Source of the DNA: Octopus sinensis
Taxonomy: Eukaryota
Reading direction: 5' to 3'
DNA: 64,000 bases
Assembly: GCF_006345805.1 (NCBI RefSeq)
Contig: NC_043007.1
Span: forward strand, 13,330,001 to 13,394,000
Shown: positions 5,101 to 58,500 of the stretch, in pieces
Layout: the number at the start of each line of letters is the position of its first letter
How positions within the stretch are numbered: the stretch's first letter is position 1
Notes under the pieces: generated by a model
The model's input: the letters and a program-made list of their open reading frames with translations, nothing else
Database searches by the model: none
Told to the model about the DNA's origin: nothing
Translations under genes and position numbers: made by a program

Positions 5101-8100
5101 AAACTCAGAAAATCCTAAAAAAAAAATTTTTTTTTAATAAAATTTTTAAAATGCAAAAAATTAAAATCTCAAGATCACTTACTGTTGAAATTAATTCCAG
5201 GGCACTTTTCTTCATTCGATTTTTCTCTTCTGGTGTCAGGTCATTCCAACGATATCTACAATAGGTTAAAAAAATGAAGAGATCAAACACTTTTTGTTTA
5301 TGGCATTTATTTTCCAATGTCAGAAAAGGAAGAGATAGGCTCAGAAATCATAAGAAGTCTAAAACCTTTAACACCCCAGTTACTCTATTAAATGTTAAGC
5401 TTATTTATTCACACTGTTTTGGGTTAATCATAGCTTATCTCATAGCTTTGGCTTTTGATGGTGAGTTTGTTGTTTTTAGAGTGACATTGTAGGGTAAGTG
5501 TGAGAAGTCAGACTAATCAGTTTAAATATAAAACAAGTTTATGATTTATGTAATGTTTAGGCCAGCCACAGGTTGGCGCAGGAGTGGCTGTGTGGTAAGT
5601 AGCTTGCTAACCAACCACATGGTTCCGGGTTCAGTCCCACTGCATGGCATCTTGGGCAAGTGTCTTCTGCTATAGCCCCGGGCCGACCAATGCCTTGTGA
5701 GTGGATTTGGTAGACGGAAACTGAAAGAAGCCTGTCGTATATATGTATATGTATGTGTGTGTGTGTGTGTGTCTGTGTTTGTTCCCCTAGCATTGCTTGA
5801 CAACCGATGCTGGTGTGTTTACGTCCCCGTCACCTAGCGGTTCGGCAAAAACAGACCGATAGAATAAGTACTGGGCTTACAAAAAGAATAAGTCCCGGGG
5901 TCGAGTTGCTCGACTAAAGGCGGTGCTCCAGCATGGTCACAGTCAAACGACTGAAACAAGTAAAAGAGTAAAAAGAGTAAGGGACCCGTGGTGGCGGTGG
6001 CTTTGGTTGTTGCAGCCTCCATTTTCCTTCTTGCCGTTTCTCTCCCTCTTTCCTGTCGTTCAGCTTCAAAATGATTTGTCACAGTGGAGATGGAAGGGTG
6101 CCAGCCTGTTGAGTAATGGGGGTCGCTGTAAATGACTCACACGCCACCCCTGAAATTGCTGGTCTTGTGCCAAAATTTGAAACCAATATTTAGGTTGGCG
6201 TTAGGAATGGCATCCAGCTGTAGAAACTCTGCCAGATCAAGATTGGAGCCTGATGCAGCCATCTGGTTCACCAGTCCTCAGTCAAATCGTCCAACCCATG
6301 CTAGCATGGAAAATGGATGTTACATAATGGTAATGATAAAAAGTACCATTCGAGTGTGATTGTTATCAGTGTCACCTTACTTGCACTTGTGCCGGTGGCA
6401 CGTGAAAAGACATTCGAGCGAGGTCGTTGCCAGTGCTGCTGGACTGGCCCTGTGCAGATGGCACATAAAAACACCATTTGAGCGTGGCCGTTGCCAGTAC
6501 CACCTGATTGGCCCTCGTGCCAGTGGCATGTAAAACACCCACTACACTCTCAGAGTGGTTGGTGTTAGGAAGGGCATCCAGCTGTAGAAGCTCTGCCAGA
6601 TCAGATTGGAGCCTGGTGCAGCCATCTGGTTCGCCAGTCCTCAGTCAAATTGTCCAACCCATGCTAGCATGGAAAGCGGACGTTAAATGATGATGATGAT
6701 TTAAATGCTAAAGGATTAAGCAAGATGTAAATTTTAGGAGCTGACTATAGTTGACATTGCTTAAATCCAGGCCAGTTATGATCCCAAAGACATTCTAAAC
6801 TTTCAAGCACATTGCACCTTGGACTGTATTACTTAATCTTTTTCCTTTTAAGATGAGAAGGCATAACAAGAATTTGGCAGCTATTTCTAATAGATCAATG
6901 ACCACACGGAAACTTCTTTGGCTGTAGCCATATTTAAATGCATAATTTTGCAGGTCCATGGCTAAGTGGTTAAGGTGTTTGGCTTATAATCATACTGGCT
7001 CCACTGAGAGAGAGAGAGAGATATCGGATCTTTTCGGTTTGAACGACAGTTTTTTCTAGCGGTGTCATATGAAATTGTCACCCATAATTATGACCCTAGT
7101 ATCGATCTATTGCATTCCAATGTTTTAGGGTTAGGGTTGGTTAGGGGGAAGGGTATCTTTTTCTTTAGAAATGTAAATAAACCCAATCTGTTTCTAAAAC
7201 GAGGGACATATTCATATGGCACAGAATGTTTTTTACCTCAATAGACGTCATTGATTGGTTGAAATTGCAGAAATTGAAGAAAAAAAAAACAACAAATATC
7301 TTACAAACTACAAAATTTTCTCAATAAAGCCAAGAGAAAAAGATGTTTTGTAAACACATTCTACCAGTGAACGAATTTCAAAATTTTTTTAGTTACCTAG
7401 AAATTATGTTAAAAAACTGCCGTTCAAACCGAAAAGATCCGAGATATCTTGTAACTTACTTGATACAATGCTCTAGAAGCTGGAGACCAAAATGCCGTAT
7501 GATGGGGGAGTAATCCTTCTGAGCCAGAATCAGACCAAACTTTATACTCTTGGAAGGCATTTCCTTCAGTTCATCACAGACCTGAAAATAAAAGAGAGCA
7601 AATTCAATAACATGATTTAAAATATTCTTCCTTTTCTTCACCACTTAATATCCGCTTTTTCATGCTTGCAGGAGCCACAGAGTATTTGTCGAGGCAGATT
7701 TTCTACAGCTGGATGTCCTTGCTGTCACCAACCCTCAGCAGATTCCTTGGCCAGACATGTTTTACAGTGATGCTTGTTTACAGCTATTTTACTTGCTTCA
7801 GTCATTTGACTGTGGCCATGCTGGAGCACCACCTGTAGTCGAGCAAATCGACCCCCAGGACTTATTCTTTGTAAACCTAGTACTTATTCTATCGGTCTCT
7901 TTTTGCCGAACCGCTAAGTTACGGGGACGCAAACACACCAGCATCGGTTGTCAAGCAATGTTGGGGGGGACAAACACAGACACACAAACATATATAATAT
8001 GTATATATATATATATACGACGGGCTTCTTTCAGTTTTCGTCTACCAAATCCACTCACAAGGCTTTGGTCGGCCCGAGGCTACAGTAGAAGACACTTGCC

Positions 8101-10818
8101 CAAGGTGCCACGCAGTGGGACTGAACCCGGAACCATGTGGTTCGTAAGCAAGCTCCTTACCACACAGCCACTCCTGCGCCTATCATTTGAAGACAGACAC
8201 ACACACACTGTTAAGTTTGACAGAATAAACTGAATGCTAAAGGGTTAAATCCCATGTTTATTAAATGATGTATCATCATCATCATCTCCATCTAATGGCC
8301 GTCTTCCATGCTGGCAAGCATAAAGATGCACCAGTTATCATTGATCCCCTCATCGACCCCCAGGCATGTACAAGAAAATAAATAAATAGTGCAGTTTCAA
8401 GGCATTTATTGATCCCTCGAATAGTCCCATCGACCACTTTGGAGACCCCTGCACTAAGATGGCAAGTTCAAAGGTTTGGGGTTCAGTCAATAATAATGAT
8501 GATGATGATGATGATAATAATAATAATAATAGTTTCAAATTTTGCCACAAGGGCAGAAACTTGGTGGGGAAGAGATGAATCAATTACATCGACCCCAGTG
8601 TACAACGGGTACTTAATTTATCGACCCCAAAAAGGATGAAAGGCAGAGTCGACCTCGGCGGAATTTGAAAGCAGAATGGAGTGACGGGTGAAATACTGCT
8701 AAGCATTTCGTCCCGCGTGCTATAATAATAATAATAATAATATGCCCTGATGCAGTACCAGGCAGTGGCTCTCATGGCTTCTGATCTCAACTAATTGGAA
8801 GTGTTATCATGTACATTGTTTTTTCTTGGTATAAAAGATTGGCTACAGCAAATATTAGGCTCAATACCACAGATTTGCCTCTGAGTTGTTTGACCATAAC
8901 CAGTTGAGCATGTCCCTTAGTGGCTGATGATATGTGCATCTCTGATCATGAGCAGAAGTAGTGGGGGAGCATCATAGCCATGTGTTGAGAGGGATTCTTT
9001 GGGGTTTGAATAATTCATCTCTGGAAACATGGGTGCTCCGTTCAACATCCTTAAACAACCCTTATTCAGGGAGCTTTTGAGCAGGATGGGTTACTCAACC
9101 AGAAGAAAATTCTAACTGGGCCCCACCTGCAAGATCGTGCATTGTTTACCTTGAGATCACCATGTCGTGCACATATGGTCGTGATGCATGTGCCTGGTGT
9201 ACCTTTATCAGACGGGTAGTCAAGATGGGTATATTGGGCTTTGTATATTTTACCCCAGTGTCACTTTGATGGCATGCACTGCTCTCTCACTCAATAATAA
9301 TAATAATAACGACAACAACAATATCATTATTATTAATAATAATCTTTTCAGCCTATAGTAATTTTGGGAAGAAGCTAAGCCGATTAAATTGGCCCAGTGT
9401 ATAACTGGTACTCGTTCCATCGACCAATAATAATAATCCTTTTTATTGTAGGCACAAGGCCTGAAATCTTGGTAGTGGGTGGGGGATGTTTAGTCGATTA
9501 CATCGACCCCAGTGTGTAACTGGTACTTATTTCATCGACTCCGAAAGGATGAAAGGCAAAATTAACCTCGTTGGAATTTGAATTCAGATCGTAAAGACGG
9601 ACGAAATGTCGCTAAGCATTTTGACCGGAGTGCTAACGATCCTGCCATCTCGCCGCCTTAAAAACAATTAATAGCAATGATAAAGATGAGCATAAGTGAT
9701 CGGTAAATATTTATTGCATCTCAGCCGGTGTTATGAACTAGTTTCTGAGAAAGGTCTATAGAACTGCTAGAAGTAGCTGTCAAATCACAGCCTTAATAGA
9801 AAATGAATGATGTATTAGAGAGGATATAGTTCTAAAGATCGAAAAAAAAAAAATAAAAGATGGGATGTGCACGCATGGAACGTCTGCTTAAATCATGGCT
9901 GACGAAGGGCTTAAGAACAATTGAGAAAATAACGAAGCCACGAAGGGAGGATACTACGCGACAGAAAGAACTGTTAGAAATAGCAGTCAAGTCTCACAGC
10001 CTACCGTCTTAAATAAAAGATAATGGCAGAATTCAAGAAGGGGAATGATCACAGTTGGAACTACTTTGATCATAGCTCTGGCAGCTCGATCGGGGCTAAA
10101 AAAAAACAGACAACCACTGAGGAATAAGCAAGATTTCACTGATATGGTGCCTTATTCCTGATGAGAAAACTCCACCGCGCAGCTCCTTAAACAAAAGAAC
10201 CTATCTCCGCACCCGTAATACCTTATACTTCATACCCAATGTGAAAATCGATTTCTGTCTCACAAACCTTTGAACAAAGAGAACATCCCGATAAAAGACC
10301 CCGGTTTTAATTTGTTATTCTACAAGTATAGTAGTAGAAAGAAAGTGCGTGTCAGACGTGGTAGTGTTATTATGGAAATTTGATATATAATTAAGGTAAA
10401 AATAAAAATTAAATTAAAAGCTTAGCGAACAAGGAACGTGTAGCTTGTTTCTAAGAGAAGAAGAATCAGTAATGAAGGAGAAAGAAAGAAAAAAGTGTTT
10501 ATTAATGAAGAAGCCGGTCAGTGGTTGTTAGAAGAACGGGGATTCCCCCTTTGTAAACGACACAATTATAATATCTGATTAGCACGCGATGGAAATCCTC
10601 TCCAAATATTTTAATTAGCATTAATTTTGAGACTAGCAATATCGGACTGTCCGATGATGGCTAAACTGGCCGAAACTTCGAAGTCCCTCTCAGTACTATT
10701 CTTGTTGGTAAAGAATAATAAATTTGCACTCTACCGAAAGTATTGAGTAATGCTTCAGATTAAAGTTAAATTGTTTTGTATTATAATATAAAAAACAAGC
10801 AATATTTATATAGAAGTA

Positions 10819-12337: not shown

Positions 12338-13916
12338 GCACTCATACACGCATTCTAAACCGTTTAATTCCACCGATCTTTGCAACGGAAGCTATAACCA
12401 CATGTATTTCTATTAAATGTTTCATGATACTGTTTAATTTAAAGATATAATCAGAATTTTATGAACCTAAATCTAGGTGTTTTCCTTTCCAGTAATTCTT
12501 CCCCCGATCTAGCATTGATTGATTCCTTGTCATATGAATAGGTACAGATGTCTTTATGCAGAAATCGTACTTTCAAATTCGTGTCGTTGGTTAAGAATTG
12601 GGGGGGGGAAAAAACCCGAAGAATATAGCTGCACTATATCGCATGTGGTTGTTAAAGTTATTTTATATATAGAGATTTACATGCAATAATGAAGCAAAGA
12701 TTATCAGTAAGGAGCAATGGCTGTTTAGAAATTTGGCGGCAGAGAAGGAGAGAAAGAGAGAGAGAGACAGACAGAACAAGGGTGAGAAAGATAATGAAAA
12801 AAAAAAAAGAGACAGAAATAGAGAAAAAGAACGGGAGAGAGAGAGAGAGAAAAGGAAAGAAAAGCGGGTGAGATGTAGGAAAATCAAGCAGAGAAGAATA
12901 GAGACGTGAGAAGATATATTTGAAAAAAGAAAAAAAAAAAAAAGTCAGATGCGGGTGGCAAATATTTGAAAATATTCTGTCGCTGTTGATTAGTCTGGGG
13001 AGAACCTTGACCGAGCAAGTCAATATAATAAGAAACTTGCAGCTGCGACCATTCTGTCGGTTTTTTTTTTCGATCATATTATTAAACGTGCACTTTTCTA
13101 AAGACATTACGGTATGATTTGAAGGGGGGAGGGGGTATGGGAGAACGGAATCTGGCTGCTGTTTCTAGCATGTTGAGCAACCACTAGAGGCTCCCTCATT
13201 GGTTCGTTCGTTACCGGCATTAAAGAATTCGAACGAAACTAAGCAAGATACCCACCATAAAACGAAAGTGTTTACAAAATATATGTCTCATAGAGATAAT
13301 TCAAATCGTCGACTAAATTGGAGAAAGCATTAAGAAATTTCGCCCGCTTTCTAAACCTTAAACATAATATATATACAGCCCGTGGTATCTAGTTCAAGTT
13401 CGCATACACATTTGCCGGTGAGTGCAATTAACTGTAATGTCGATCGCACGAAACCTTTAAATACGACGGAATAATTCGATTTACTCCTTTCTTCCATAAT
13501 AAACACACATATGTATATAGTTAAACATGCAGATTCCGCCGAGGTCGACTTTGCCTTTCATCCTTTCGGGGTCGATAAATCAAGTACCAGTTACGCACTG
13601 GGGTCGATGTAATCGACTTAATCCCTTTGTCTGTCCTTGTTTGTCCCCTTGTGGGTAGTAGGGAAATATATAGTTAAACATGTACGTGTAAGCGTGAAAG
13701 GTCATGTATGATACTGTAATAGATACAAGACAAAGTGAGCGCATTTGAATTTCACTTTTACCAAAAGAAAGAAGGAAATAGTTTCGTAAATGCCTTAATT
13801 AGTTAATCAATTAATTAATATCTCACCTGGTGCGCTAAGATTCGTTCCTGCTGGCTCACAGCTGGGTTCATCACTGTGTCCACGGCTGTTATGAGGTGTT
13901 GAACATCTGTATCCAT
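1958..13916 (-). CDS. XPO5: Exportin-5, multi-exon gene span (5' part; continues beyond the left edge)
   Basis: Six exons with GT-AG ends and compatible phases join into one frame: MDTDVQHLITAVDTVMNPAVSQQERILAHQ|VCDELKE...IRHFGLQLLEHCIK|YRWNDL...|GTQGILVEEHHIKDAVSRITVEILKRDWPQLW...|ETQTELVLMVFLRVVEDVIAFQSIPQQRRREIQQTL...|...CRVCEAVLQTLCGFVEWV...AAECLLLIVSRR. This matches the importin-beta N-terminal/Xpo1 domains of exportin-5. Confidence 0.95.
3109..3490 (-). mobile_element. tRNA-derived SINE family A (also 55-424, 14579-14870, 36133-36515, 44150-44505, 33828-34020)
   Basis: tRNA-like head GGCGCAATGGCCCAGTGGTTAGGG...GGTT..GATTCCC; 12-bp TSD TGGTTTATGAAA. Confidence 0.88.
3665..3847 (-). CDS. 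XPO5: XPO5 coding exon 5 (183 nt)
   Basis: CTACAG acceptor; ETQTELVLMVFLRVVEDVIAFQSIPQQRRREIQQTLTANLGDLFKFFLAKLNYHKGQYQSL; GTAAGT donor. Confidence 0.95.
4387..4524 (-). CDS. XPO5: XPO5 coding exon 4 (138 nt)
   Basis: CTTCAG acceptor; GTQGILVEEHHIKDAVSRITVEILKRDWPQLWATLLKDLEILSRQG; GTTTGT donor. Confidence 0.95.
5183..5255 (-). CDS. XPO5: XPO5 coding exon 3 (73 nt)
   Basis: TTGTAG acceptor; YRWNDLTPEEKNRMKKSALELIST; GTAAGT donor, phase 0. Confidence 0.93.
5575..5980 (+). mobile_element. tRNA-derived SINE family B with internal (TA)/(TG) microsatellite and (AAAAGAGT)n tail
   Basis: More than 12 dispersed copies, e.g. 7787-8180, 16852-17247, 19895-20287, 25929-26339, 30515-30840, 33266-33650, 43610-43990, 50915-51331, 51862-52290, 53063-53485, 55990-56396, 60440-60840. 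Source of the recurring [22 protein letters not shown] pseudo-ORFs. Confidence 0.9.
7026..7440. mobile_element. MITE family B (GGATCTTTTCG TIR, 8-bp TSD)
   Basis: TIR of about 24 bp; TSD GAGATATC on both sides. Other copies: 15944-16527, 35344-35765, 53822-54236. Confidence 0.9.
7460..7581 (-). CDS. XPO5: XPO5 coding exon 2 (122 nt)
   Basis: TTTTCAG acceptor; VCDELKEMPSKSIKFGLILAQKDYSPIIRHFGLQLLEHCIK; GTAAG donor, phase 2. Confidence 0.95.
12008..12220. repeat. Near-perfect palindrome, 105-bp arms, 3-nt loop
   Basis: 12008-12112 pairs with 12116-12220, with one G:T mismatch. Confidence 0.95.
13827..13916 (-). CDS. XPO5: XPO5 coding exon 1 (90 nt)
   Basis: AAAATGG start context; MDTDVQHLITAVDTVMNPAVSQQERILAHQ; donor CAG|GTGAG, phase 0. 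Too short for the ORF track. Confidence 0.9.
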
Positions 13917-14905: not shown

Positions 14906-15427
14906 GTATTTCGTCTGCCGTTACGTTCTGAGTTCAAATTCCGCCGAGGTCGACTTTGCCTTTCATCCTTTCGGGGTCGATTAATTAAGTACCAGTTACG
15001 CACTGGGGTCGATGTAATCGACTTAATCCGTTTGTCTGTCCTCTTTGTGTTTAGCCCGTTGTGGGTAGTAAAGAAATAGGTATTTCGTCTGCCGTTACGT
15101 TCTGAGTTCAAATTCCGCCGGGGTCGACTTTGCCTTTCATCCTTTCGGGGTCGATTAATTAAGTACTAGTTACGCACTGGAGTCGATGTAATCGACTTAA
15201 TCCGTTTGTCTGTCCTCTTTGTGTTTAGCCCGTTGTGGGTAGTAAAGAGATAGGTATTTCGTCTGCCGTTACGTTCTGAGTTCAAATTCCGCCGGGGTCG
15301 ACTTTGCCTTTCATCCTTTCGGGGTCGATTAATTAAGTACCAGTTACGCACTGGAGTCGATGTAATCGACTTAATCCGTTTGTCTGTCCTCTTTGTGTTT
15401 AGCCCCTTGTGGGTAGTAAAGAAATAG
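14906..15427 (+). repeat. Head-to-tail array of three 174-nt SINE family D bodies
   Basis: Units start at 14906, 15080 and 15254; contain GTCGACTTTGCCTTTCATCCTTTCGGGGTCGAT.AATTAAGTACCAG (MetaSINE-like central domain, from recall). Confidence 0.9.
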
Positions 15428-15457
15428 CTATGAGACAACAGTCTCATGTCATACTTT

Positions 15458-15811: not shown

Positions 15812-16689
15812 GGTACTACTTGAAAACAGTGGTCCCGGTGCGCGCACTCGCGTAGTCGCGCGTTCGCGCTAGCTAGTCATGACTAGTCGATCCTTACTTT
15901 GTGTTTTTGTTTGTGATTTACTTTGTTTTAAAAAATTATTTTCGGATCTTTTCGCTTTGACCGGCAGATTTTTAAAATAATTTCTTTGTAACTTAAACAC
16001 TTTTAAACTTCGTATACTGGAAGAATGTGTTTATAAAACAACATCTTTTTCTCTCGGCTTTCTTGAGAAAATTCTGTAGTTTGTAAGATATTTGTTGTTT
16101 ATTTTCTTGCATTTCGGTAATTTCAACCAATGTGGTCCCATGTGGTCTAGTGGTTAGGATTCCTGGCTTTCACCCAGGCGGCCCGGGTTCGATTCCCGGC
16201 ATGGGAACGTTAATTTTTAGAAGGCGGCGACTTGGCAGAATCGTTAGCACGTCGGGCGAAATGCTTAGCGGTATTTCGTCTGGCGCTACGTTCCGAGTTC
16301 AAATTCCGCCGAGGTCGACTTTGCCTTTCATCCTTTCGGGGTCGATAAATTAAGTACCAGTTACGCACTGGGGTCGATGTAATCGACTTAATACCTATGT
16401 CTGTCCTTGTTTGTCTCCTCTGTGTTTAGCCCCTTGTGGGTAATAAAGAAATAGGTAATTTCAACCAATCAATGACGTCTATTGAAGAAATTATTTTAAA
16501 AATCTGCCGGTCAAAGCGAAAAGATCCTTATTTACTTTTTTGTGTTTTCGTGTTTTATTTACTTTGTATAACAAAAATTACTTATTTTGTGTTTTATTTA
16601 CTTTGCTAGGTAGTCGTCGTAGGATCGATTAGCGCGGATGCGCGACTACGTGAGTGCGCGCACCTGGACCACTGTTCTCAAGTAGTACC
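15812..16689. mobile_element. MITE family A (GGTACTACT TIR, 9-bp TSD) carrying nested insertions
   Basis: Long imperfect TIRs; TSD ACGTTTAAA/ATGTTTAAA; contains MITE B copy 15944-16527. Confidence 0.88.
16136..16207 (+). tRNA. tRNA-Glu(TTC), 72 nt, structurally intact
   Basis: TCCCATG/CATGGGA acceptor stem; CCTGG-CT-TTC-AC-CCAGG anticodon arm; CCGGG-TTCGATT-CCCGG T arm; TGGTCTAGTGG A box; TTTTT at 16214-16218. Confidence 0.93.
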
Positions 16690-21931: not shown

Positions 21932-22849
21932 TAAAATACAAATTCTATTTCCCTATATACATTCCACGTGCCTCGAAATCTCCTATCTTTGTCAAAGTAC
22001 TTCAGTCGAGACAGTCAAGTTGGTTCATATCAATGTTGGTGATATGATAACGGAACTGCTGTCTTACTGCCTTGATTTACACATAGCATATCGTAAATGT
22101 CACAACCAGGGAAATAATACTTCTGGTTATATATTGACCCTCAAAATCAACAGAGTTACGAAACAGACTTCATGGCTATAGAGTCAGGCCCATGATTATT
22201 CTGGATTTAAAGAAGTCAAAATCCTAAATTACATTAGTGTCGAAGGAGAATTCTTAAAATTCAATTGAATATACACTTTGTCAGGTGTATGATAAAGCGA
22301 AGAGGAAATTCTGATGGTACCTTTAAGCAGCCCTAGCTTGGCAGTCGATAGGAGGTGTTGTTCAGTTTTGCTAGAATCAGTGTTAGGAAGGAAATTAAAG
22401 GTAGCAAAGGTGTTTCAGAGTGATACTCATTTACTCTTTCATTTGTTTCAGTCATTTGACTGCAGCCATGCTGGAGCACCACCTTTTTGGTTGAACAAAT
22501 CGATCTCGGGACTTATTCTACTAGTCTCTTTTGCTGAACAGCTAAGTTATGAGGATGTAAACATACCTATTTCTTTACTACCCACAGAGAAGACAAACAA
22601 GGACAGAAAAACGGATTAAGTCGATTATATTGACCCCAGTGCGTAACTGGTCCTTAATTTATCGACCCCGAAAGGATGAAAGGCAAAGTCGACCTCGGAG
22701 GAATTTGAACTCAGAACGTAGCGGCAGACGAAATACTGCTAAGCATATCGCCCGGCGTGCTAACGATTCTGCCAGCTTGCCGAGGATGTAAACATACCAG
22801 CATCGGTTGTCAAGCAATGGTGGTGGTGAGGGGACAAACAGAGACACAA

Positions 22850-28486: not shown

Positions 28487-40514
<12,028 letters not shown>

Positions 40515-44923: not shown

Positions 44924-45474
44924 GTATTTCGTCTGCCGCTACGTTCTGAGTTCAAATTCCGCAGAGGTCGACTTTGCCTTTCATCGTTTTGGGGTTGATA
45001 AATTAAGTACCAGTTACGCACTGGGGTCAATGGAATCGAGTTAATCCATTTGTCTGTCCTTGTTTGTCCCTTCTGTGTTTAGCCCCTTGTGGGTAGTAAA
45101 GAAATAGGTATTTTGTCTGCTGTTACGTTCTGAGTTCACATTCCACCGAGGTCGACTTTGCCTTTCATCCTTTCAGGGTTGATAAATTAAGTACCAGTTA
45201 CGCACTGGGGTCAATGGAATTGACTTAATCCGTTTTTCTGTCCTTGTTTGTCCCTTCTGTGTTTAGCCCCTTGTGGGTAGTAAAGAAATAGGTATTTCAT
45301 CTGCTGTTACGTTCTGAGTTCAAATTCCGCCGAGGTCGACTTTGCCTTTCATCCTTTCGGGGTCAATTAAATAAGTATCAGATACGCACTGGGGTCGATG
45401 TAATTAACTTAATCCCATTGTCTGTTCTTGTTTGTCTCTTCTGTGTTTAGCCCCTTGTGGGTAGTAAAGAAATA
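44924..45474 (+). repeat. Head-to-tail array of three 184-nt SINE family D bodies
   Basis: Units start at 44924, 45108 and 45292. Single copies at 16221-16453, 38148-38368 and 63800-64000. Confidence 0.9.
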
Positions 45475-45535: not shown

Positions 45536-45696
45536 ATGGGTATCACTGGTCTGTTGCCATTCCTTAAGAAGATCCATGTACCAACAAATATATCACAATT
45601 CCAAGGAGCAACTGTTGCGGTGGATGTGTATTGCTGGCTTCACAAAGGAGCATTTTCTTGTGCTGAGAAATTGGCGTTTGGAGAGGACACAGATCA
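45536..45696 (+). CDS. EXO1: EXO1 coding exon 1 (161 coding nt; exon starts at 45519)
   Basis: TTTTCAG acceptor ends at 45518; [53 protein letters not shown]; GTAAGT donor, phase 2. Confidence 0.97.
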
Positions 45697-48600
45697 GTAA
45701 GTAGAACTTTACAAGACATTGTCCTTCATGCTGCCTGTCTGTCCAGAACGCCCACATTTGTATGTATGTCACTGTATTGGCATCACTTTAGTTCTTAAGC
45801 ATTTAATCCTGCCATCTCTACCCTAAATAGTCTACCTGATTTACGGGTGGGTGCTGTAAAGTTCTTGGCGTTAAGGGTATCACAAAATGCCTGATTGGAG
45901 GCCCAAACTTCCAAGTTCTTTTAAAGGGCTTAGAAAAACTGAAGGACCGCTGAAATAGTGTGTGAATCTGAAATGGGAATATCTTCAGTAAAATCATAAT
46001 TAACTGATCTTCCTGTATTTCCTTTTACCCAAAGCCAGGAACTTTTCAGTACTTCGTCATATGTTCAAACTGGCCATGTCTCACACTTACCCTACAGTGT
46101 CATTGTAAAATTACACAATCACATCATTGAAACGTTAGCACGCCGGGCAAAATGCTTAGCAGTATTTCGTCTGCCGCCACGTTCTGATTTCAAATTCCGT
46201 TGAGGTCAACTTTGCCTTTCATCCTTTCGGGGTCGATTAAATAAGTATCAGTTACTCACTGGAGTCGATATAATTGACTTAATCCGTTTGTCTGGCCTTG
46301 TTCGTCCCCCCTATGTTTAACCCCTTGTGGGTAGTAAAGAAATAGGTATTTCGTCTTTATGTTCTTAGTTCAAATCCTGCCGAGGTTGACTTTGCCTTTC
46401 ATCCTTTCGGGGTCGATAAATTAAGCACCAGTTGTGTACTGGGGTCGATCTAATCAACTGCCCCCCCCTCCCCCAAAATTTTGGGCCTTGTGCCTAGAGT
46501 AGAAAAGAAAGCTATGAGATATTGCATGATTAATTCAAAACAATGTGAATAAACAAGTTTTATATTTGATAGAGAAAGATGAATTCTAAAGGGTCTACGC
46601 CTCACTGCTCCATGTTTGCAGAGTGAGACGGAATTTATTGAGGCGGGTTTTCTGTGGATGCTCTTGCTGTCACTAACCTTCCTGCTTCTAAGTGAGATCA
46701 TATTTCACTGTGACCAGGCTTTAACACTTCAGCATTTTAACTGGCCATATCTGGCCCAAATATTCTACCTGTTTGTTGAAACCAACCAGGTCCAGCCTAT
46801 CACACTTACCCTTCAATGCCATTCTAAAAACATTCAATCACATCATCAAAATTTCAAAGCTACCAGATAAAGCATGATTAATTAGCAACAATGTGAATTA
46901 AAAAAAAAAAAACATTACATTTGGCAGAGCAAGCTGAATGCTAAAGGGTTATTGATTTTAGGTAAAATAAATGAATGGTTGGCGTTAGAAAGGGCATCTA
47001 GCTGTAGAAACTCTGCCAGATCAAGACTGGAGCCTGGTGCAGCCATCTGGTTCGCCAGCCCTCAGTCAAACCGTCCAACCCATGCTAGCATGGAAAGCGG
47101 ACGCTAAACGATGATGATGATGATAAATGGTTGATCACTATTGACCTCAGGTGGTTGCAGTAGAATTTCTTGTTAGTGGAGCCTAACCATCTCACATTTG
47201 ATGTCTAATTACTTTGTCATAAGTTTTGATATTTCACTTTCTTAACAGTTTACTTTACATTTTAGCAGTTAAACTAGCCATATCCGGCCCAGATATTCTA
47301 CCTTGCTTTCCGTTCAAACCATCTAGATTTGGCCTCTAGCGCTTGCCCTGCAACGGCATTCTAAAAATTAACAATCTCATCATGGAAGTTTTGAAACTCC
47401 GAGACAATGCATGATAAATTCAAAACAGTTTGAATAAATACGCATTATATTTGATTGAGGGCTCAGAGGGCTTTTGTTTCTTCATTTTCTTCATGTCATC
47501 ATCATCATCATCATCGTTTAACGTCCGCTTTCCATGCTAGCATGGGTTGGACGGTTCAACTGGGGTCTGGCGAGTCCGAAGGCTGCACCAGGCCAGGCTG
47601 ATCTGGCAGTGTTTCTACAGCTGGATGCCCTTCCTAACACCAACCACTCCGAGAGTGTAGTGGGTGATTTTATGTGCCACCGACACAGGTGCCGGACGAG
47701 GCTGGCAGACGGCCACGCTCAGATGGTGTTTTTTATGTGCCACCGACACAGGTGCCAGACGAGGCTGGCAGACGGCCACGCTCGGATGGTGTTTTTTATG
47801 TGCCACCGACACAGGTGCCAGACGAGGCTGGCAAACGGCCACGATCGGATGGTGTTTGTTACGTGCCCACAGCACGGAGGCCAGTCGATGCAGTACTGGC
47901 TACGGCCACGTTCGGATGGTTTTCATGTCAATGTTTAAATTATGATAGATCTTATTTTTCTCCTAAATTTTGTTTTATAGGTATATATACTATTGTATGA
48001 AATATGTCAACTTTATGATCAGCAAAAATTTGAAGCCAATCCTTGTGTTTGATGGCTGTCATCTTCCTTCCAAAAAAGACGTCGAAGACAGCAGAAGAGA
48101 GTAAGTGACATTTTTTTATTCAGCTGTTTATTTGCATAAACTCATTCTGTCAGAGTTAATTTACTCGTTAGCAAATAATTTACGCAATTTAAGTTGCTAA
48201 CTTTGAAAGTTTTTGTTATCTTTTATCTTTTACTTGTTTCAGTCATTGGACTGTGGCCATATTGGGGCATCGCCTTGACGGGTTTGGTCAAACAAATTGG
48301 CACCAGTACTTATTTTCAAGTCTGGTATTTTATATGTCCCTTTCATCAAGCTGTTAAGGTATGGGGATATAACCAACCCAACACTGGCTCATTCTCTCTC
48401 TATTTCCTCTTATTGCTCTCTGTCGAAGAGTGTAGGATCAAAACGTAAAAGACTTTTCCATTTTTCCTGAGTGTCAAACTAAATACACTTGCTTGTTGTT
48501 CATACATTCCTGTCTTCATCTTTTGTTTTTTTTATAAATTTGAACTATATATGTATTTGTTAATGCATGAAAGTCTTGGACCTTGAGCCACTCTGATACT

Positions 48601-48933: not shown

Positions 48934-51900
48934 TCATCATCATCATCATTTAGCGTCCGTTTTCCATGCTAGCATGGGTTGGACGGTTCTACTGGGGTCT
49001 GTGAAGCCAGAAGGCTTCATCAGGCCCAGTCAAATCTGGCAGTGTTTCTACGGCTGGATGCCCTTCCTAACGCCAACCACTCTGTGAGTGTAGATATATA
49101 TATATATGTATGTATATATAATCAAAATGAGGGTGAAAAATTGGATATTAATTTGATAACATCAATTTTAACACCAGTGGTCCAGCATATAAAAAATACT
49201 GAAATTCAATAAATAGTATTTCATACATAAATATAAGAGGGAATTTTTTTAACCACTAGGTGGAAACCCTTATGCTAGAAGAAGATCTGCTATGGTAGAC
49301 CATAGCAGATCTTCTTCTAGCATAAGGGTTTCCACCTAGTGGTTAAAAAATTCCCTCTTATATTTATGTATGAAATATATATATATTCATTTGTATAAAT
49401 GCAAATTGCAGGAGTGGAACAGGTAAAATTCCAGGTTAGATATGTTTCCTAAGCTAGCAGATCCTCAACAAGGGCTACTCACTCAGCCAGCTACTCGTCA
49501 AGCCGAAGATACCTTAATTATATGAAGGTTACCTCGTTGTTTGGGAACCCCCAAGTTAACTTACTGAAGATGTTATTTGAAATGAGTCTTGAAGCCAGAT
49601 GAACAGTGTAAGACAGATTTATTTTTGTTTCATGATAGCCGGCGAAAAGTTTACCGTCAAAAGGCTGCACAGTTTTTGAAAGAAGGCAAACGAAGTGAAG
49701 CTAAGGAATGTCTCCAGAGGTGTGTGGATATTACTCCAGACATGGCTAGAAAACTCATTGAGGTAAGAACAGTAGATTTCTCTGCATTCATCTCTTTGCT
49801 TTTACCACATTATGTCGGTGAACAGTGCATGGCACTCTTTTCGATGGGGATCAGCTTGTAATAAGGATGTTCAGTCGCTCTTCCTTGGAGACTCAGCATG
49901 ATAACATTTGTAGTGGTTAAGTGTGTATCATGGAACACGGATGCAAATGGAATGTGTAGGTCTTAAAAGTGAAAAATGCGTGAGCCGATCCATGATTAAA
50001 AATGATTTTGGCTATTGCCAGCGTCGCCCCGACTGGCCTCCGTGCCGGTGGCACGTAAAAGCACCATCCGTTCGTGTCCGTTGCCAGCCTCGCCTGGCCC
50101 CCGTGCCGGTGGCACGTAGCACCATCCGTTCGTGGCCATTGCCAGCCTCGCCTGGCCCCTGTGCCGGTGGCACGTAAAAGCACCATCGTGCGGGTGGCAC
50201 GTAAAAAGCACCCACTACACTCACGGAGTGGTTGGCGTTAGGAAGGGCATCCAGTCGTAGAAACACTGCCAGATCAGACTGGGCCTGATGCAGCCTTCTG
50301 GCTCCACAGACCCCAGTTGAACCGTCCAACCCATGCTAGCATGGAAAGCGGACGCTAAATGATGATGACTACATACAGAATGTAAGCAACTGCTACGAGT
50401 TAGAAATATAAACCTTATGGCCATATCACGTTGAAAGCACCGGTTCCTGTCCGATCACCGAGGTTAAGCAACATCGAGCTTAGTTAGTACTTAGATGGGT
50501 GACCGCTTGAGAAACTGTGTCCTCTCCAAACGCCAATTTCTCAGCACAAGAAAATGCTCCTTTGTGAAGCCAGCATGGAGAACGGATGTTAAACGATGAT
50601 GATGATGTTGATGAAACCGAGTACATTTGTGGAAGTCATATATCAGGAATGAATATGTTTGTGTGTGTGAGACAGTAGTCTATCATGGCATTTCGAACAT
50701 TTCTCTCGATCTCTGCGGTTAATTTTTACACATTCACAAATGCAAGCAACCTCTCTTGGTTCCCATGCCAGGGTTATGAAGTGCATAATCCAGTAGAACA
50801 AGTAGAAGTGTGTTGTATACTCCCTATGACTGTGATTGAAGACAATAGTCACAACAGTTTGATACCTCTAATCAAAGGTCCTAAGTATAGTCTTAACCCT
50901 TTCGTTACTATATTACTCTTTTTACTCTTTTACTTGTTTCAGTCATTTGACTGCTGCCATGCTGGAGCACCACCTTTAGTTGAGCAACTCGACCCCGGGT
51001 CTTATTCTTTTTGTAAGCCCAGTACTTATTCTATCGGTCGCTGTTGCCGAACCGCTAAGTGACGGGGACGTAAACACACCAGCATCGGTTGTCAAGCAAT
51101 GCTAGAGGGACAAACACACAAACATATACGCACACATGCACATATACATATATATATATATACATTTATACGACAGGCTTCTTTCAGTTTCCGTCTACCA
51201 AATCCACTCACAAGGCATTGGTGGGCCCGGGCCTATAGCAGAAGACACTTGCCCAAGGTGCCACGCAGTGGGACTGAACCCGGAACCATGTGGTTGGTTA
51301 GCAAGCTACTTACCACACAGCCACTCCTGCGACTATATATTTCTTATTTCTTTACTGCCCACAAGGGGCTAAACATAGAGGGGACAAACAAGGACAGACA
51401 AAGGGATTAAGTCAATTACATTGACCCCAGTGCTGTACATTGCTACTATATTTCTAAGTTAAAAACACCCCTTATGAGTTTCAATTAAATTCTAAAATAA
51501 TCACGAATTTAGGCTGGTTTCATTAAGCAACTGTAACTTTTTTATTTAGCGACATGTTAATGTGATTTTTGGAAAACAATTCAAGAAAAGGTTCTTAATT
51601 TGCATCGCTTTAGTCTCAAAGTAACTCTAATTACAGGTAAATACAGGTGAATCACAAGCTTTTTTCTCGGATTGTTTACTTTCTGTGTAATGGTTTGTTT
51701 CCGCAGATCATGTCATACAAGCTTACATTTGGTTGATTTCTCCATAGCTTTTGTTTAAAAGCCCTCAAATTCAGAATCACTTCTTAATAGCATGAAACTG
51801 TTATCCATTTTAAAAGTTGAAATAAAATCACCAAAGAAAAAAATGTGGAAAAAATTTTCTAAGGCATAGGAGTGGCTGTGTAGTAAGTAGCTTGCTTATG

Positions 51901-53324: not shown

Positions 53325-55529
53325 CGGGCTTCTTTCTGTTTCCATCTACCAAATCCACTCACAAGGCTTTGGTTGGCCCGAGGCTGTAGTAGGAGACACT
53401 TGCCCAAGGTGCCTCACAGTGGGACTGAACCCGGAGCCATGTGGTTGGTAAGCGAGCTACTTAACACACAGCCACTCCTACGCCTGTATATGAAGTGTGT
53501 GAGATAAATCTTCCTTTCGCAGGGTAAATAAACAACATCTGTTATTCCATGTCATTTATATTATCTCCTTGATAGATGAAATATTCAATTTTACTTTCCT
53601 TCTTTTAAAACAGGTGTGTCAAAAACAAGGGATTGATTGCATTGTTGCCCCTTACGAAGCTGATGCTCAGTTAGCCTATTTATCGCAATCTGGGATTGCC
53701 CAGATTGTTGTTACCGAAGACTCCGACTTGTTACTATTTGGTTGTGACAGAGTAAGTTTCTCTCACTGTCTCTCCATTACCATTTTTTTGTCTCTTTCTT
53801 CTTATATTAAATTCGTTTTTCAGATCTTTTCGCTTTGACCGGCAGATTTTAAAAATAATTTCTTTGTAACTAAACACTTTTAAACTTTGTAAACTGGTAG
53901 AATGTGTTACATAAAATATCTTTTTCTCTCGGCTTTCTTGAGAAAATTCTGTAGTTTGTAAGCTATTTGGTCTTTAATTTCATATGACACCGGAAATTAT
54001 TGTTGTTGACAACGCTCTGGCGAAATTGTTTTCACCTTAACAGATGTCACTGATTGGTTGAAATTGCCGAAATGCAAGAAATTAAACAACAAATAGCTTA
54101 CAAACTACAGAATTTTCTCAAGAAAACCAAGAGAAAAAGATGTTTTATAAACACATTCTACCAGTTTACAAAGTTTAAAATTTTTTAGTTACAAAGAAAT
54201 TATTTTAAAAATCTGCCAGTCAAAGTGAAAAGATCCCATTTTTCTATGGTAGCTTTGGACATTTGAATAGACTTGGGGCAATTATTTTATTACTGGGAGT
54301 AGTGGCAGGAGATCTACCTTGAAATAGTGACCTGCCTACAACTGGTGGGCAGTATCTTTTAATTAATGGAGTGAGAGCCTTCATTTGTAAATTAGAGCTC
54401 TAAGTTTTTTTCACTTGCACCCACTACACTCTTGGAGTGGTTGGCATTAGGAAGGGCATCCAGCTTAGAAACCTTGATCAATCAGATTGGGGCCTGGTGC
54501 AGCTGCTGGCTTAAAAGAAATCTGGCACTTATTTTAACCACACAGCCATGTCTGTGCTTTTGGCCATTGATTGTGTCAACACGAATGTCCATAAAAGATG
54601 AAATTTTACCACTTTTAATTCAATACTTTGAAAAACGAATTGAATTTCTTCTTTGCAGGTGATTTTCAAGATGGATTTCTATGGAAATGGCATCATGATT
54701 GAAAAATCCAGACTAAATGAAGCCATTGACATCAGAGATGGATTCTACACCTTCAATAAATTTAGACACTTGTGTATTCTGTCCGGCTGCGACTATTTAA
54801 GTTCTTTACCTGGCATCGGCTTAGCAAATGCTTGTAAAGTATTCAAATTAGCCAGACAGGCAGATCTTAGACAGGTAATTTTTTTTCCAATCATATTTTG
54901 CAATTTATAATTTTTTTTCCCACTTTCTTTGACCTCTCTTTTTTTTTTTTTTTTTTTTTTTGCTTATGTCTACCCCATCATCGTTTAATGTCTGCTTTCC
55001 ATGGTGGCATGGGTTGAATGGTTTGACATGGAACTGGCTAGCAACGAGCTGTCCAGACTCCACCTGTCTGTTGTGGCATGATTTCTACGGCTGGATGCCC
55101 ATCCTAACTCCAACCACTTTACTGAGTGTGCTTTCTAGTGGTTTTAGTGAGGTTTTGAGAATTCTGGCGATTTGCTCTAGTTGAGAAGACATGTCAATCT
55201 AAGTGCATTTGTGGTTGTGGCTAGTGCTAGTGACATGTAAAAGACACTTGATAAATTGTAAAGTGGTTGGTGTCAGGAAGGGTATCCAGCTGTAGAAAGC
55301 AAGCCAAAAGAGACTGGAACCGGGTGTAGCTCTCTGGGTTACCAGCTCCAGTCAAAACTATCTGACTCATGCCAGCATGGAGAGCGAACGTTAAATGGTG
55401 ATGATGGGTAAGAGGCACAGAACCTCCGTCCCACTGCGCGGCACCTTGGCCAAATGTCTTCTACTATAGCCTCAGGCCGGCCAAAGTCTTGTGAGAGGGT
55501 TTGGTAGATGGAAACTAAAAGAAGCCCGT

Positions 55530-55560
<31 letters not shown>

Positions 55561-58500
55561 CTAATGTAGGATAAAATTTTTGGGGGGAAACAAATTTTAT
55601 CAATGGCCAGCATATCAAAAAATACCTTTAAAGGTTAAATTTATAAATAATTTACAAAATGAGGGCAGAAGAAAAATTCTAATGCCAAATAGATGGCCAG
55701 CATATCAAAAAATACCTTTAAAGGTTAAATTTATAAATAATTTACAAAATGAGGGCAGAAGAAAAATTCTAATGCCAAATAGATGGCCAGCATATCAAAA
55801 AATACCTTTAAAGGTTAAATTTATAAATAATTTACAAAATGAGGGCAGAAGAAAAATTCTAATGCCAAATATGCCGAAAAAGAGACAAAAATTGTCAATA
55901 ACCATTATAATTTATGTGTCTCGAAACAAACCGATAGAAATTTCTAAAAAATCCGTTATTACAGTATTGTAAATTATATATATATATATACTCTTTTACT
56001 CTTTACTCTTTTACTTGTTTCAGTCATTTGATTGCGGCCATGCTGGAGCACCGCCTTTAATCGAGCAACTCGACCCCGGGACTTATTCTTTTGTAAGCCC
56101 AGTACTTATTCTATCGGTCTCTTTTGCCGAACCGCTAAGTAACGGGGACGTAAACACACCAGCATCAGTTGTCAAGCAATGCTAGGGGACAAACTCAGAC
56201 ACAAACACGCATATATATATATATATATACATATATACGACGGGCTTCTTTCAGTTTCCGTCTACCAAATCCACTCACAAGGCTTTGGTCGGCCCGAGGC
56301 TATAGTAGAAGACACTTGCCCAAGGTGCCACGCAGTGGGACTGAACCCGGAACAATGTGGTTGGTAGACAAGCTACTTACCACACAGCCACTCCTATATT
56401 GCAAATAAGAAAATGGAGAAGCACAATAGTTGGTTCATCAACTTTAAGACAGTAAAATGTTAACTTTAATAATTGGGTATTATACCAACAGTACATTGGA
56501 TAGATATTATCCCTTAGCGGGTTGGACCCACAACACCTAACTTTCTTGGAGTTATATATATATATATATATGTGCGTGTCTCTGTGTCTGTGTTTGTCCT
56601 TCCACCATTGCTTGACAACCGATGTTTGTGTGTTTATGTCCCCGAAACTTAGCAAAAAAAGACTGATAGAATAAGTCTTTGGGGTCAATTTTTTTGACTT
56701 AAGGCAGTGCTCCAGCATGGCCACAGTCAAATGACTGAAGCGTGTAGAAAAGCATAGTAAACAAATGCCCTTTCTGTATTTTACTTTTCTTTTCTTTTCA
56801 TTTCTTGCAGCTTCTTCGTAAAATTCCATCTTATTTAAATAAATCGTTCAGTGTTCCCAACGAATACATCGAAGGTTTCATCCGTGCAGAGAACACGTTC
56901 CTTTATCAGTTGATATTTGATCCCTTAACTCGAAAATTGCTCCCTCTCAACCCTTATCCCGAAGATCTTACACCCGATGACCTTCACTATGCCGGAACGT
57001 ATCCTTTGCAAGAATTCATTTTACAGCAAATTTTGGTTCAGTGTTGCAATGTCTGACACTCAACTCATTCTCAGACATATTGGGATGTGTGATGTTTGTC
57101 TGTGTGAATGTTGGTGTATGTTTGTGTTTAAGAAAAAAAAAACTTGGCATTTTTGTTCCCCCATCACTGTTTCTCAACTGGTGTTGGTGTGTTTACATCT
57201 CTGTAACTTAGCAGTTCGGCAAGGTAGACCGATAGAATAAGTACCAGACTTACAAAAGTACTGGGATCGATACAATCGACTGAAAGTTCTTCAAAGCGGT
57301 GCCCCAGCGTGGTCACGGTCTAATGACTGAAACAAGTGAAAGATAAAACGTATAATAATAATAATAAACATTGTGTACAGTGCTCAGGTGCACTACAACT
57401 CATCTAAAGTGCATATATAATCAGGTGTAGTTTCGACGGATTTCGGAAAGCATGAGGGCCTTAAAGGATGCAGTGTCATGGCAGTCAACAACTGACGCAG
57501 GCAGTTTATTCCATGCTTCAGCAACTCTGAGCATGAAGAAATGTTTCCGAAAGTCATGGGAGCTGTGTTGTTTTCTGACTTTGTAGGCATGTCCACGTGT
57601 GTTAGACACATGGAGATCAAAAAGGTGTTCATATAGATCAAAAAGGTGTATATATATATAAACACACAATCAAATTCTGTGTGTCACCATTGTAATAATT
57701 GATTAATTAATCCTTAATTAATATCTAAGATACATTCCAAGATCTGAAGCGTTTGATATTGCTTTGGGTAACACTGACATTCAGACAAGAAAGAAACTAT
57801 CAAACTTCAATCCTGACACAGATTTGGTAAGTTGCTTTGTTTTTCTATCCTTTTCATTTCTTTTTTCTTTTTTTTTTTTTGCTTTTCTTAAAATTTGAAA
57901 TACAATATGAATTTTTTTCATTACCGTTGCTGGTGGCATGCAATAAGCACCATTCATTCATGTGTGGGTCGCTGCAAGAGCTACCTGACTTGCTCCCTTT
58001 GCTGGTGGTGCGTAAAAAGCACCATCCAAATGTGGTCGATGCCAGTGCTGCCTGACTGGCTCCTGTGTCAGTGGCACGTAAAAGGCACCATCCGAACGTG
58101 GCCGATGCTAGTGGCACGTAAAAAGCACCATTCGAACATGGTCAATGCCAACCCCTTGCCCTGACTGGCTTGTGTGCCAGTGGAACGTGAAAAGCACCAT
58201 CCAAACATGACTAATGCCAGTGCCGCCTGACTGGCTCCCGTGCCAGTGGCACATAAAAAGCACCCACTACACTTTGAGTAGTTGGTGTTTGGAAGGACAT
58301 CCAGCTGTAGAAACATTGCCAGATCAGATTGGAGCCTGGTGCAGCCTCCTGGCTTGCCAGTCCCCAGTCAAACTGTCCAACCCATGCCAGGATGGAAAAT
58401 GGACGTTAGATGATGATAAATAAAATTTAGAATATGAGAGGTTTGCTTTTTGTCTTTTGAGATATACATAGGAAGGAAAGATGACAGAAAGAGAGAGAGA

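Follow-up and report, generated by a model that had tools for sequence, protein, structure and literature searches.

We describe a 322-bp insert in a foldback repeat of Octopus sinensis, in which an intact tRNA-Glu(TTC) gene copy, with a putative leader on its 5' side and a terminator-type trailer on its 3' side, is joined end to end to a full-length SINE, termed SINE D. The whole unit was, with high probability, placed in the foldback repeat by one retroposition event of the LINE type (target-primed), and the locus is a fresh example of the established class of U6/LINE-type chimeric retrocopies rather than a novel mechanism. The features of the locus are given below, with coordinates counted along the window, that is, the whole stretch of 64 kb of DNA that was analysed.

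15812-16689, strand not applicable: host repeat 'MITE B', a MITE-like foldback element with nested inverted arms, which took up the insertion
16116-16131, plus strand: target-site duplication, 5' copy, GGTAATTTCAACCAAT (exact 16-mer repeat)
16132-16135, plus strand: GTGG, putative 4-nt pre-tRNA 5' leader, bordered by the duplication and tRNA position 1 and missing at the empty site
16136-16207, plus strand: tRNA-Glu(TTC), 72 nt, intact, without CCA (ARAGORN, Rfam)
16208-16218, plus strand: 3' trailer CGTTAATTTTT, with T5 at 16214-16218, a run of the Pol III terminator type
16219-16220, plus strand: AG linker from the U-tract to the SINE D start, not found before AAGG in the other full-length copies
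16221-16453, plus strand: SINE D, full-length, subfamily 'D1', 233 bp, AAGGCGGCGA ... GTAATAAAGAAATA (BLAST, alignment of copies)
16454-16469, plus strand: target-site duplication, 3' copy, GGTAATTTCAACCAAT (exact 16-mer repeat)

The 16-mer GGTAATTTCAACCAAT is an exact direct repeat that occurs in two copies only, spaced 338 bp apart, whereas the chance expectation for a 16-mer pair with up to two mismatches, as estimated from shuffled sequence, is about 0.13 matches. The host repeat that surrounds it is built from outer inverted arms at 15812-15871 and 16630-16689 and inner inverted arms at 15930-15986 and 16485-16541, with complementarities of 92% and 91%, respectively, and its paralogues are located in the window at approximately 7254-7442, 35579-35777 and 53817-54236. 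For the empty-site comparison, paralogous host-repeat copies within the 64-kb window were used that match both the upstream and the downstream flank of the insert. In all three of them (7190-7350, 35515-35680 and 53990-54150, each on the minus strand) the duplicated sequence is present once, as a single [G/T]GCAATTTCAACCAAT that continues uninterrupted into CAATGACGTCTATTGA / CAATGACG... Since the site occurs once in each of three host-repeat paralogues, the 16-mer is the target-site duplication of the 322-bp insert. The original prediction, derived from the DNA letters of the window, had described the 16-mer as duplicated on either side of a tRNA-SINE unit and as single-copy in the MITE B copy near 53822; the duplication is exact, and the empty site was confirmed in that copy and in two more. 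The same prediction had named an empty MITE B carrying the 16-mer twice as the observation that would contradict it, and with a single copy in each of the three paralogues the reading stands.

Within the insert (16132-16453), GTGG, tRNA-Glu(TTC), the trailer CGTTAATTTTT, AG and SINE D follow one another in this order, with the modules abutting and in the same orientation, and the sequence across the junction from tRNA to SINE D is GGGAACGTTAATTTTTAGAAGGCGGCG. The SINE module is preceded by ...TTTTTAG and followed by GGTAATTT..., while the tRNA module is preceded by ...CCAAT and its trailer is followed by AGAAGG..., neither combination forming a repeat pair. A single event is indicated since the 16-bp repeat encloses the full 322 bp, the empty site is single-copy and neither module is separately flanked. 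Both outer edges of the insert coincide with RNA ends, the left one lying 4 nt before the tRNA and the right one being the canonical 3' end of SINE D. The machinery that mobilises SINE D is probably responsible because the insert has the D1 3' end, because duplications and truncations of this kind are seen in other D1 copies and because the duplication starts at GGTA. The predicted order of leader, tRNA-Glu, trailer, AG and SINE D was recovered with all its elements in place, and the proposal that the pre-tRNA-Glu and the SINE had been retroposed as a single unit is supported, there being one 16-bp duplication pair and no internal repeats.

The tRNA-Glu(TTC) is the sole tRNA detected by ARAGORN in the 64-kb window, and the Rfam model RF00005, which has a gathering score of 29, matched it at 66.5 bits over model positions 1-71 of 71. 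Its cloverleaf is composed of canonical pairs throughout (21/21), the internal promoter boxes are intact (A box TGGTCTAGTGG; B box GGTTCGATTCC), its 5' boundary from the flank reads ...CAACCAATGTGG directly followed by TCCC, and the discriminator A is succeeded by CGTT instead of CCA. The tRNA is identical at 72 of 72 positions to the tRNA-Glu genes on contigs L005 and L006, which originate from separate ENA samples, and at 71 of 72 positions to those on contigs L003 and L004. In each of these four contigs a run of T4-T6 starts 2-9 nt 3' of the tRNA, so that the T5 of the insert, at +7 to +11 from the tRNA, is comparable with the four reference loci and occupies a natural terminator position. 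The leaders and trailers of the same four fetched contigs differ from GTGG and CGTTAATTTTT, and therefore none of the four is the parent of the insert.

The left edge of the insert is 4 nt 5' of the tRNA and about 12 nt 5' of the A box, and a start about 12 nt upstream of the A box is plausible for Pol III initiation. GTGG may be a Pol III leader, although part of it could be untemplated nucleotides at the 5' junction. On account of the 4-nt leader, the missing CCA and the trailer that ends in T5, the 5' module is supported as an unprocessed pre-tRNA, probably of the primary Pol III transcript type. This agrees with the earlier description of a tRNA with leader and U-tract trailer but no CCA, and the ARAGORN and Rfam results and the complete pairing show the tRNA itself to be intact. 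GTGG, tRNA and trailer together amount to 87 nt. The minimum free energy fold of the 88-nt pre-tRNA gave a z-score of -0.33, which is uninformative, the covariance model being the relevant test, and a scan for sigma-70 promoters and intrinsic terminators was set aside as not applicable to a eukaryotic Pol III unit.

The 3' module belongs to a dispersed family. A BLAST search of the window with the insert as query returned about 17 further SINE D copies, fragments and array units of 82-95% identity, and the element carries an A-box-like motif (TGGCAGAATCG), a B-box-like motif (GAGTTCAAATTCC) and a conserved core (TTTGCCTTTCATCCTTTCGGGGTCGATAAA). Three other full-length copies (starting at about 9671 on the minus strand, 62904 and 63798) begin with AAGG[C/T]GGC, the same as the SINE of the insert, and the DNA upstream of them is unrelated; AAGG is probably the true 5' end of SINE D, because four copies with unrelated flanks start there. 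The D1 copies, the insert included, terminate at ...AAAGAAATA (...GTAGTAAAGAAATA), and the 3' end of SINE D carries ...CCCCTTGTGGGTAGTAAAGAAATA, while a second subfamily, 'D2', terminates in (ATT)n. Hence the characterisation of the module as a full SINE D, made at the outset, agrees with its canonical AAGGCGGCGA start and with an end at ...AAAGAAATA as in the D1 copies.

Individual D1 copies are bounded by duplications of their own, namely 17 bp (GGTATGTTTACATCCTC) at 22583-22774, 16 bp at 13530-13660 and 8 bp at 51345-51447, and several other D1 copies are 5'-truncated. Own duplications and 5' truncation are hallmarks of LINE-mediated retroposition. The 16-bp duplication at the insert falls inside the 8-17-bp range of the other D1 copies, and GGTA is the start of the duplication both at the insert and, independently, at copy 22583-22774. 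With dispersed copies, defined 5' and 3' ends, distinct target duplications and truncations, SINE D has the copy pattern of a SINE. A search of its head with the Rfam tRNA model gave no match at E values up to 10, so that any tRNA origin of the head would be hypothetical. No partner LINE sharing the SINE D tail was seen in the 64-kb window, and a LINE-like ORF fragment at 38873-39292 has no SINE D-like tail behind it.

With regard to how the two RNAs came to be joined, we consider it somewhat more probable than the contrary that a reverse-transcriptase template switch led from the 5' terminus of the SINE D transcript to a nascent, U-tailed pre-tRNA-Glu. According to this scheme, the reverse transcriptase that mobilises SINE D would nick the target at GGTA and prime on the 3' tail of a SINE D transcript, copying this transcript up to its extreme 5' end. 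The enzyme would then jump end to end onto the 3' end of a nascent pre-tRNA-Glu(UUC) that still possessed its 4-nt leader and U-tract trailer, and the pre-tRNA would be reverse-transcribed to its own 5' end, after which resolution of the second strand would create the 16-bp duplication. The AG would either have been added without a template during the jump or represent the two initial bases of the SINE transcript; put differently, the linker may be untemplated, or it may consist of 5' leader bases of the SINE RNA. The expected product is a tRNA-Glu gene copy at a new site, whose internal promoter is intact and which has brought its T5 terminator along, with an intact SINE D behind it. The joining of a terminated transcript to a complete SINE RNA predicts the layout that is observed.

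Several observations count against the template switch. The 3' partner in U6/L1 chimeras is typically 5'-truncated and here it is full-length, a condition that suits a template-end jump and read-through equally, and the case consists of a single locus with no partner LINE in the window. Published chimeras also offer few parallels, those of snRNAs with Alu being reported as rare in human (PMC4476161) and those of tRNA with L1 in primates having mostly antisense tRNA halves in place of sense, full-length pre-tRNAs (bioRxiv 10.1101/2025.02.02.635956).

The most serious rival to the template switch is read-through by Pol III, a form of 5' transduction in which a parental SINE D would have been situated 2 nt behind the T5 of a tRNA-Glu gene, the T5 would have been ignored and the whole transcript would have been retroposed. 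The parental layout would then have been ...GTGG, tRNA-Glu(TTC), CGTTAATTTTTAG, SINE D. Such a transcript would yield the same edges as those of the insert, with a plausible transcription start on the left and the SINE 3' end on the right, its SINE part would be full-length as found, and within the SINE body there is nowhere a run of four or more T to halt Pol III. The T5 at 16214-16218, which is 2 nt upstream of the SINE start, is the only such run in the 322-bp insert. Leaky Pol III termination at short T runs is documented. Yet read-through demands two coincidences, a SINE within 2 nt of a terminator and the failure of a normally placed T5; moreover, beyond the SINE end there is no trace of a 3' duplication from the parental site, which could, though, have been lost through stringent LINE priming. 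The template switch is favoured over read-through because the tRNA part ends exactly at T5 and the canonical SINE start follows 2 nt on, and we regard read-through as a possible but rather unlikely origin of the unit.

Ligation of the two RNAs prior to reverse transcription, with the 3' end of the pre-tRNA joined to the SINE D transcript at its 5' end by an RtcB-type activity, predicts the same sense-sense and end-to-end layout but appears highly improbable on chemical grounds. RtcB ligation uses a 3' end with a 2',3'-cyclic phosphate and a partner with a 5'-OH, which is a poor fit: the 3' end of a nascent pre-tRNA is UUU-OH, and a primary SINE transcript made by Pol III carries a triphosphate at its 5' end. 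A clean ligation would, in addition, leave the AG unexplained unless AG were part of the SINE RNA. RtcB-mediated ligation itself has been demonstrated for U6/L1 chimeric RNAs (PMC6789731).

It is conceivable, though we judge it to be extremely improbable, that a composite (dimeric) SINE family headed by tRNA-Glu already exists, with the unit as one of its regular full-length members and the other SINE D copies as 5'-truncated forms. This view is favoured by the AT-rich DNA upstream of two D2 copies (at about 9671 and 62904), which loosely resembles the trailer and allowed the BLAST alignments to reach insert positions 77-79. Against it, the four copies that begin at AAGG within unrelated flanks argue that this is a true 5' end. 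A T5 between the modules would also be expected to hinder co-transcription of a dimer. By BLAST, every other SINE D copy in the 64-kb window lacks tRNA-Glu sequence.

Two resemblances in the flanking sequence were considered and rejected. The trailer as a part of SINE D was discarded, for the flanks of these two D2 copies consist of an ATT/ATC/GTT microsatellite that is also present on the 3' side, and the D1 copies are without it; the flanks of the two copies are thus target or duplication sequence, because the same microsatellite occurs on both sides. A 6-nt similarity between TAATTT of the trailer and the start of the duplication was likewise rejected as a carried-over parental duplication, being out of register and attributable to chance in AT-rich sequence.

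Related chimeras were looked for outside the window as well. A protein search with the 73-aa ORF that extends across the tRNA, the trailer and the SINE head (16132-16353) yielded 146 matches, all of them translations of tRNA-Glu from eukaryotic contigs, among which 0 reach SINE D and 0 have the trailer translation TLIF. An exact look-up of three mechanical ORFs lying across the junctions (16132-16353, 16436-16609 and 16210-16368) found no record. A pattern for the junction (tRNA 3' end, 1-30 nt, SINE head) gave 0 matches in the JGI metagenomes, and a pattern for the tRNA end and trailer gave 0 matches in the GTDB genomes and IMG/VR, both being weak negatives as these collections apparently do not contain cephalopod DNA. 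The SINE D core 27-mer was present in two metagenome contigs that have only the 31-38-nt core in common with it; since they share the core only, relevant cephalopod DNA is apparently missing from the collections, which weakens the external negatives. The original prediction had also raised an early stage of a new SINE family and called for a count of further tRNA-SINE D chimeras; with no second chimera among the window copies or the outside matches, that suggestion is unsupported, the count beyond this locus being 0 (window, 146 ORF matches and pattern scans lacking cephalopod DNA).

Two independent insertions, a DNA-level capture in which the unit filled a break, or an error of assembly are generic alternatives with nothing specific in their favour, and they are very improbable, seeing that the modules are without flanking repeats of their own, that both outer edges are RNA ends and that a perfect 16-bp duplication of a site single-copy in the paralogues is the signature of target-primed reverse transcription, unlike end joining or misassembly.

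The two modules of the insert differ in their degree of change. The tRNA has 0 changes in 72 nt, while the SINE joined to it departs from the D1 majority at 9 of 216 comparable sites. If all nine SINE changes had arisen after the insertion, the probability of 0 changes in the 72 nt of the tRNA would be about 0.05, and that of 0 changes in both copies of the duplication about 0.26. Either the insertion is young and the SINE differences derive mostly from the source copy, or the tRNA would be constrained. It is plausible that the tRNA copy is a possibly functional gene, as it is identical to bona fide genes, with boxes and terminator intact; its upstream context is now host-repeat DNA. The unchanged tRNA beside 9/216 changes in the SINE is a hint towards a working gene. 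The broader supposition that the retrocopy is a working gene and that pre-tRNAs hitch-hiking on SINE RNAs recurrently disperse functional tRNA genes in this genome and seed new composite SINEs is an unlikely one.

Chimeras of U6 with L1, L2 and RTE are the nearest known relatives of the insert, and they are attributed to template switching, which is the accepted model for U6/L1 (Buzdin 2002, 2003; Garcia-Perez 2007; Doucet 2015; PMC4476161). For the stringent L2 and RTE LINEs, a template switch was the only route to chimeras seen by Doucet et al., and chimeras of snRNA with a SINE (Alu) are reported to be rare in human (PMC4476161). Like the U6/LINE chimeras, the insert comprises a complete Pol III RNA that ends in a U-tract, is positioned 5' of the retroelement part in the same sense and shares with it one duplication pair. 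It differs from them in that the 5' partner is an unprocessed pre-tRNA in place of U6, that the host is a mollusc, with SINEs apparently of octopus type, and that the product retains all that a type-2 Pol III gene needs; in comparison with U6/L1, the 3' partner is a complete SINE, there a 5'-truncated LINE or mRNA.

In primates, 21 loci of tRNA/L1 chimeras have been reported, mostly with antisense tRNA halves and ascribed to twin priming (bioRxiv 10.1101/2025.02.02.635956). They resemble the present insert in that tRNA and retroelement were co-inserted once, theirs with 9-19-bp duplications (bioRxiv 10.1101/2025.02.02.635956), whereas the tRNA described here is full-length, in sense, equipped with leader and trailer and fused to a SINE. 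The human 'tailless' pre-tRNA retropseudogenes made by a LINE (L1) (Schmitz et al. 2004, cited in PMC4476161) are likewise retrocopies of unprocessed nuclear pre-tRNA generated by LINE machinery. They stand alone, while the pre-tRNA of the insert rides on a SINE whose tail gives the recognition by reverse transcriptase.

The birth and dimerisation of SINEs through exchange of modules by template switching have been reviewed (PMC4758252, PMC4824008, conclusion of PMC4476161). The insert resembles the initial step that has been postulated for the genesis or dimerisation of SINEs, with a tRNA module 5' of a module that has a LINE-recognised tail, yet unlike composite SINEs it exhibits no sign of amplification, has a strong terminator between its modules and possesses, in place of a degenerate head, a tRNA that is still perfect. 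It is also like the retrocopies produced by 5' transduction or read-through, in which a retroelement takes with it sequence from upstream of itself, with the difference that Pol III would have to ignore the T5 terminator.

Models for the origin of SINEs and composite SINEs rest on the assumption that, from time to time, a small RNA made by Pol III is linked by a LINE reverse transcriptase to an RNA with a LINE-recognised tail. To our knowledge, fresh and undegraded products of such joining are rarely seen, and hardly ever outside mammals. The locus provides a clean snapshot, with a perfect tRNA, leader and terminator intact, a full SINE and perfect duplications, and, as a single locus, it serves as an illustration and does not amount to a discovery. 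Such an event can move a complete and self-sufficient tRNA gene, which is relocatable as a whole because type-2 Pol III promoters are internal, and, if recurrent, it would constitute a retroposition route that spreads tRNA gene families.

The target site of the tRNA-Glu(TTC) chimera, which carries SINE D as its 3' module, begins with GGTA (16116–16119); the three host-repeat paralogues, the other copies in the window of the foldback repeat that received the chimera, have GGCA or TGCA at this position (7266–7269, 35591–35594, 54065–54068). The chimera's SINE D belongs to D1, one of two subfamilies told apart by their 3' tails, and another D1 duplication likewise opens with GGTA. Both observations point tentatively to priming through microhomology or to a target-site preference on the part of the partner LINE. 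Head-to-tail arrays built from the 3' two-thirds of SINE D also occur in the window:

14906–15431, SINE D tandem array
44924–45474, SINE D tandem array
46129–46459, SINE D tandem array

The units repeat every 174 and 184 bp, each in three copies and with identities of 97% and 91%, and they are joined as ...AAAGAAATA|GGTATTTCGTCT. Given this junction, and since the duplications of independent D1 insertions also open with GGTA, the arrays may have originated when SINE D inserted into a resident copy at its internal GGTAT site, the 5' end then being resolved through homology.

The second subfamily, D2, was represented by the following copies:

9440–9671, minus strand, D2 copy
62904–63120, plus strand, D2 copy
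8540–8722, minus strand, D2 copy

D2 retains the SINE D head and core and carries a distinct tail, ...GGCCTTGTGCCTAYARTARAAAAG followed by (ATT)n, while ATT/ATC microsatellite borders its copies on both sides. Together, the distinct tail and the microsatellite flanks suggest a LINE partner or a target preference other than that of D1.

Two further features of the window were recorded:

38873–39292, plus strand, 139-aa ORF terminating in a zinc-knuckle-like motif
55603–55871, tandem repeat of a 90-bp unit, three copies at 100% identity

Some LINE ORF2 proteins typically carry such a motif at their C-terminus; a SINE D copy is located 500 bp upstream of the ORF, and no SINE D-like tail comes after the ORF. 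The 90-bp repeat is a very young tandem duplication, and the mechanical ORF at 55580–55972 translates its units.

A different head was encountered in another SINE of the window:

50416–50620, plus strand, 5S rRNA-like head (Rfam RF00001, 81 bits, full-length) with SINE tail
45632–45692, minus strand, second 5S-SINE fragment, 61/61 identical, spanning the 5S end and linker

Helix I of the 5S-like head is mispaired, no T run lies downstream of the head, and the approximately 90 nt that follow terminate in ...AGCCAGCATGGAGAACGGATGTTAAACGATGATGATG, a tail common to about 14 other SINE 3' ends within the window. The two loci look like members of a 5S-headed SINE family whose tail is held in common with a tRNA-type SINE.

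The SINE D core TTTGCCTTTCATCCTTTCGGGGTCGATAAA, exemplified in the window at 16320–16350, presumably resembles a Deu/Nin-type domain. It was matched exactly in two JGI metagenome contigs, L001 (74–104) and L002 (1620–1657). As these contigs are otherwise unrelated, the core is a widely shared central domain of invertebrate SINEs.
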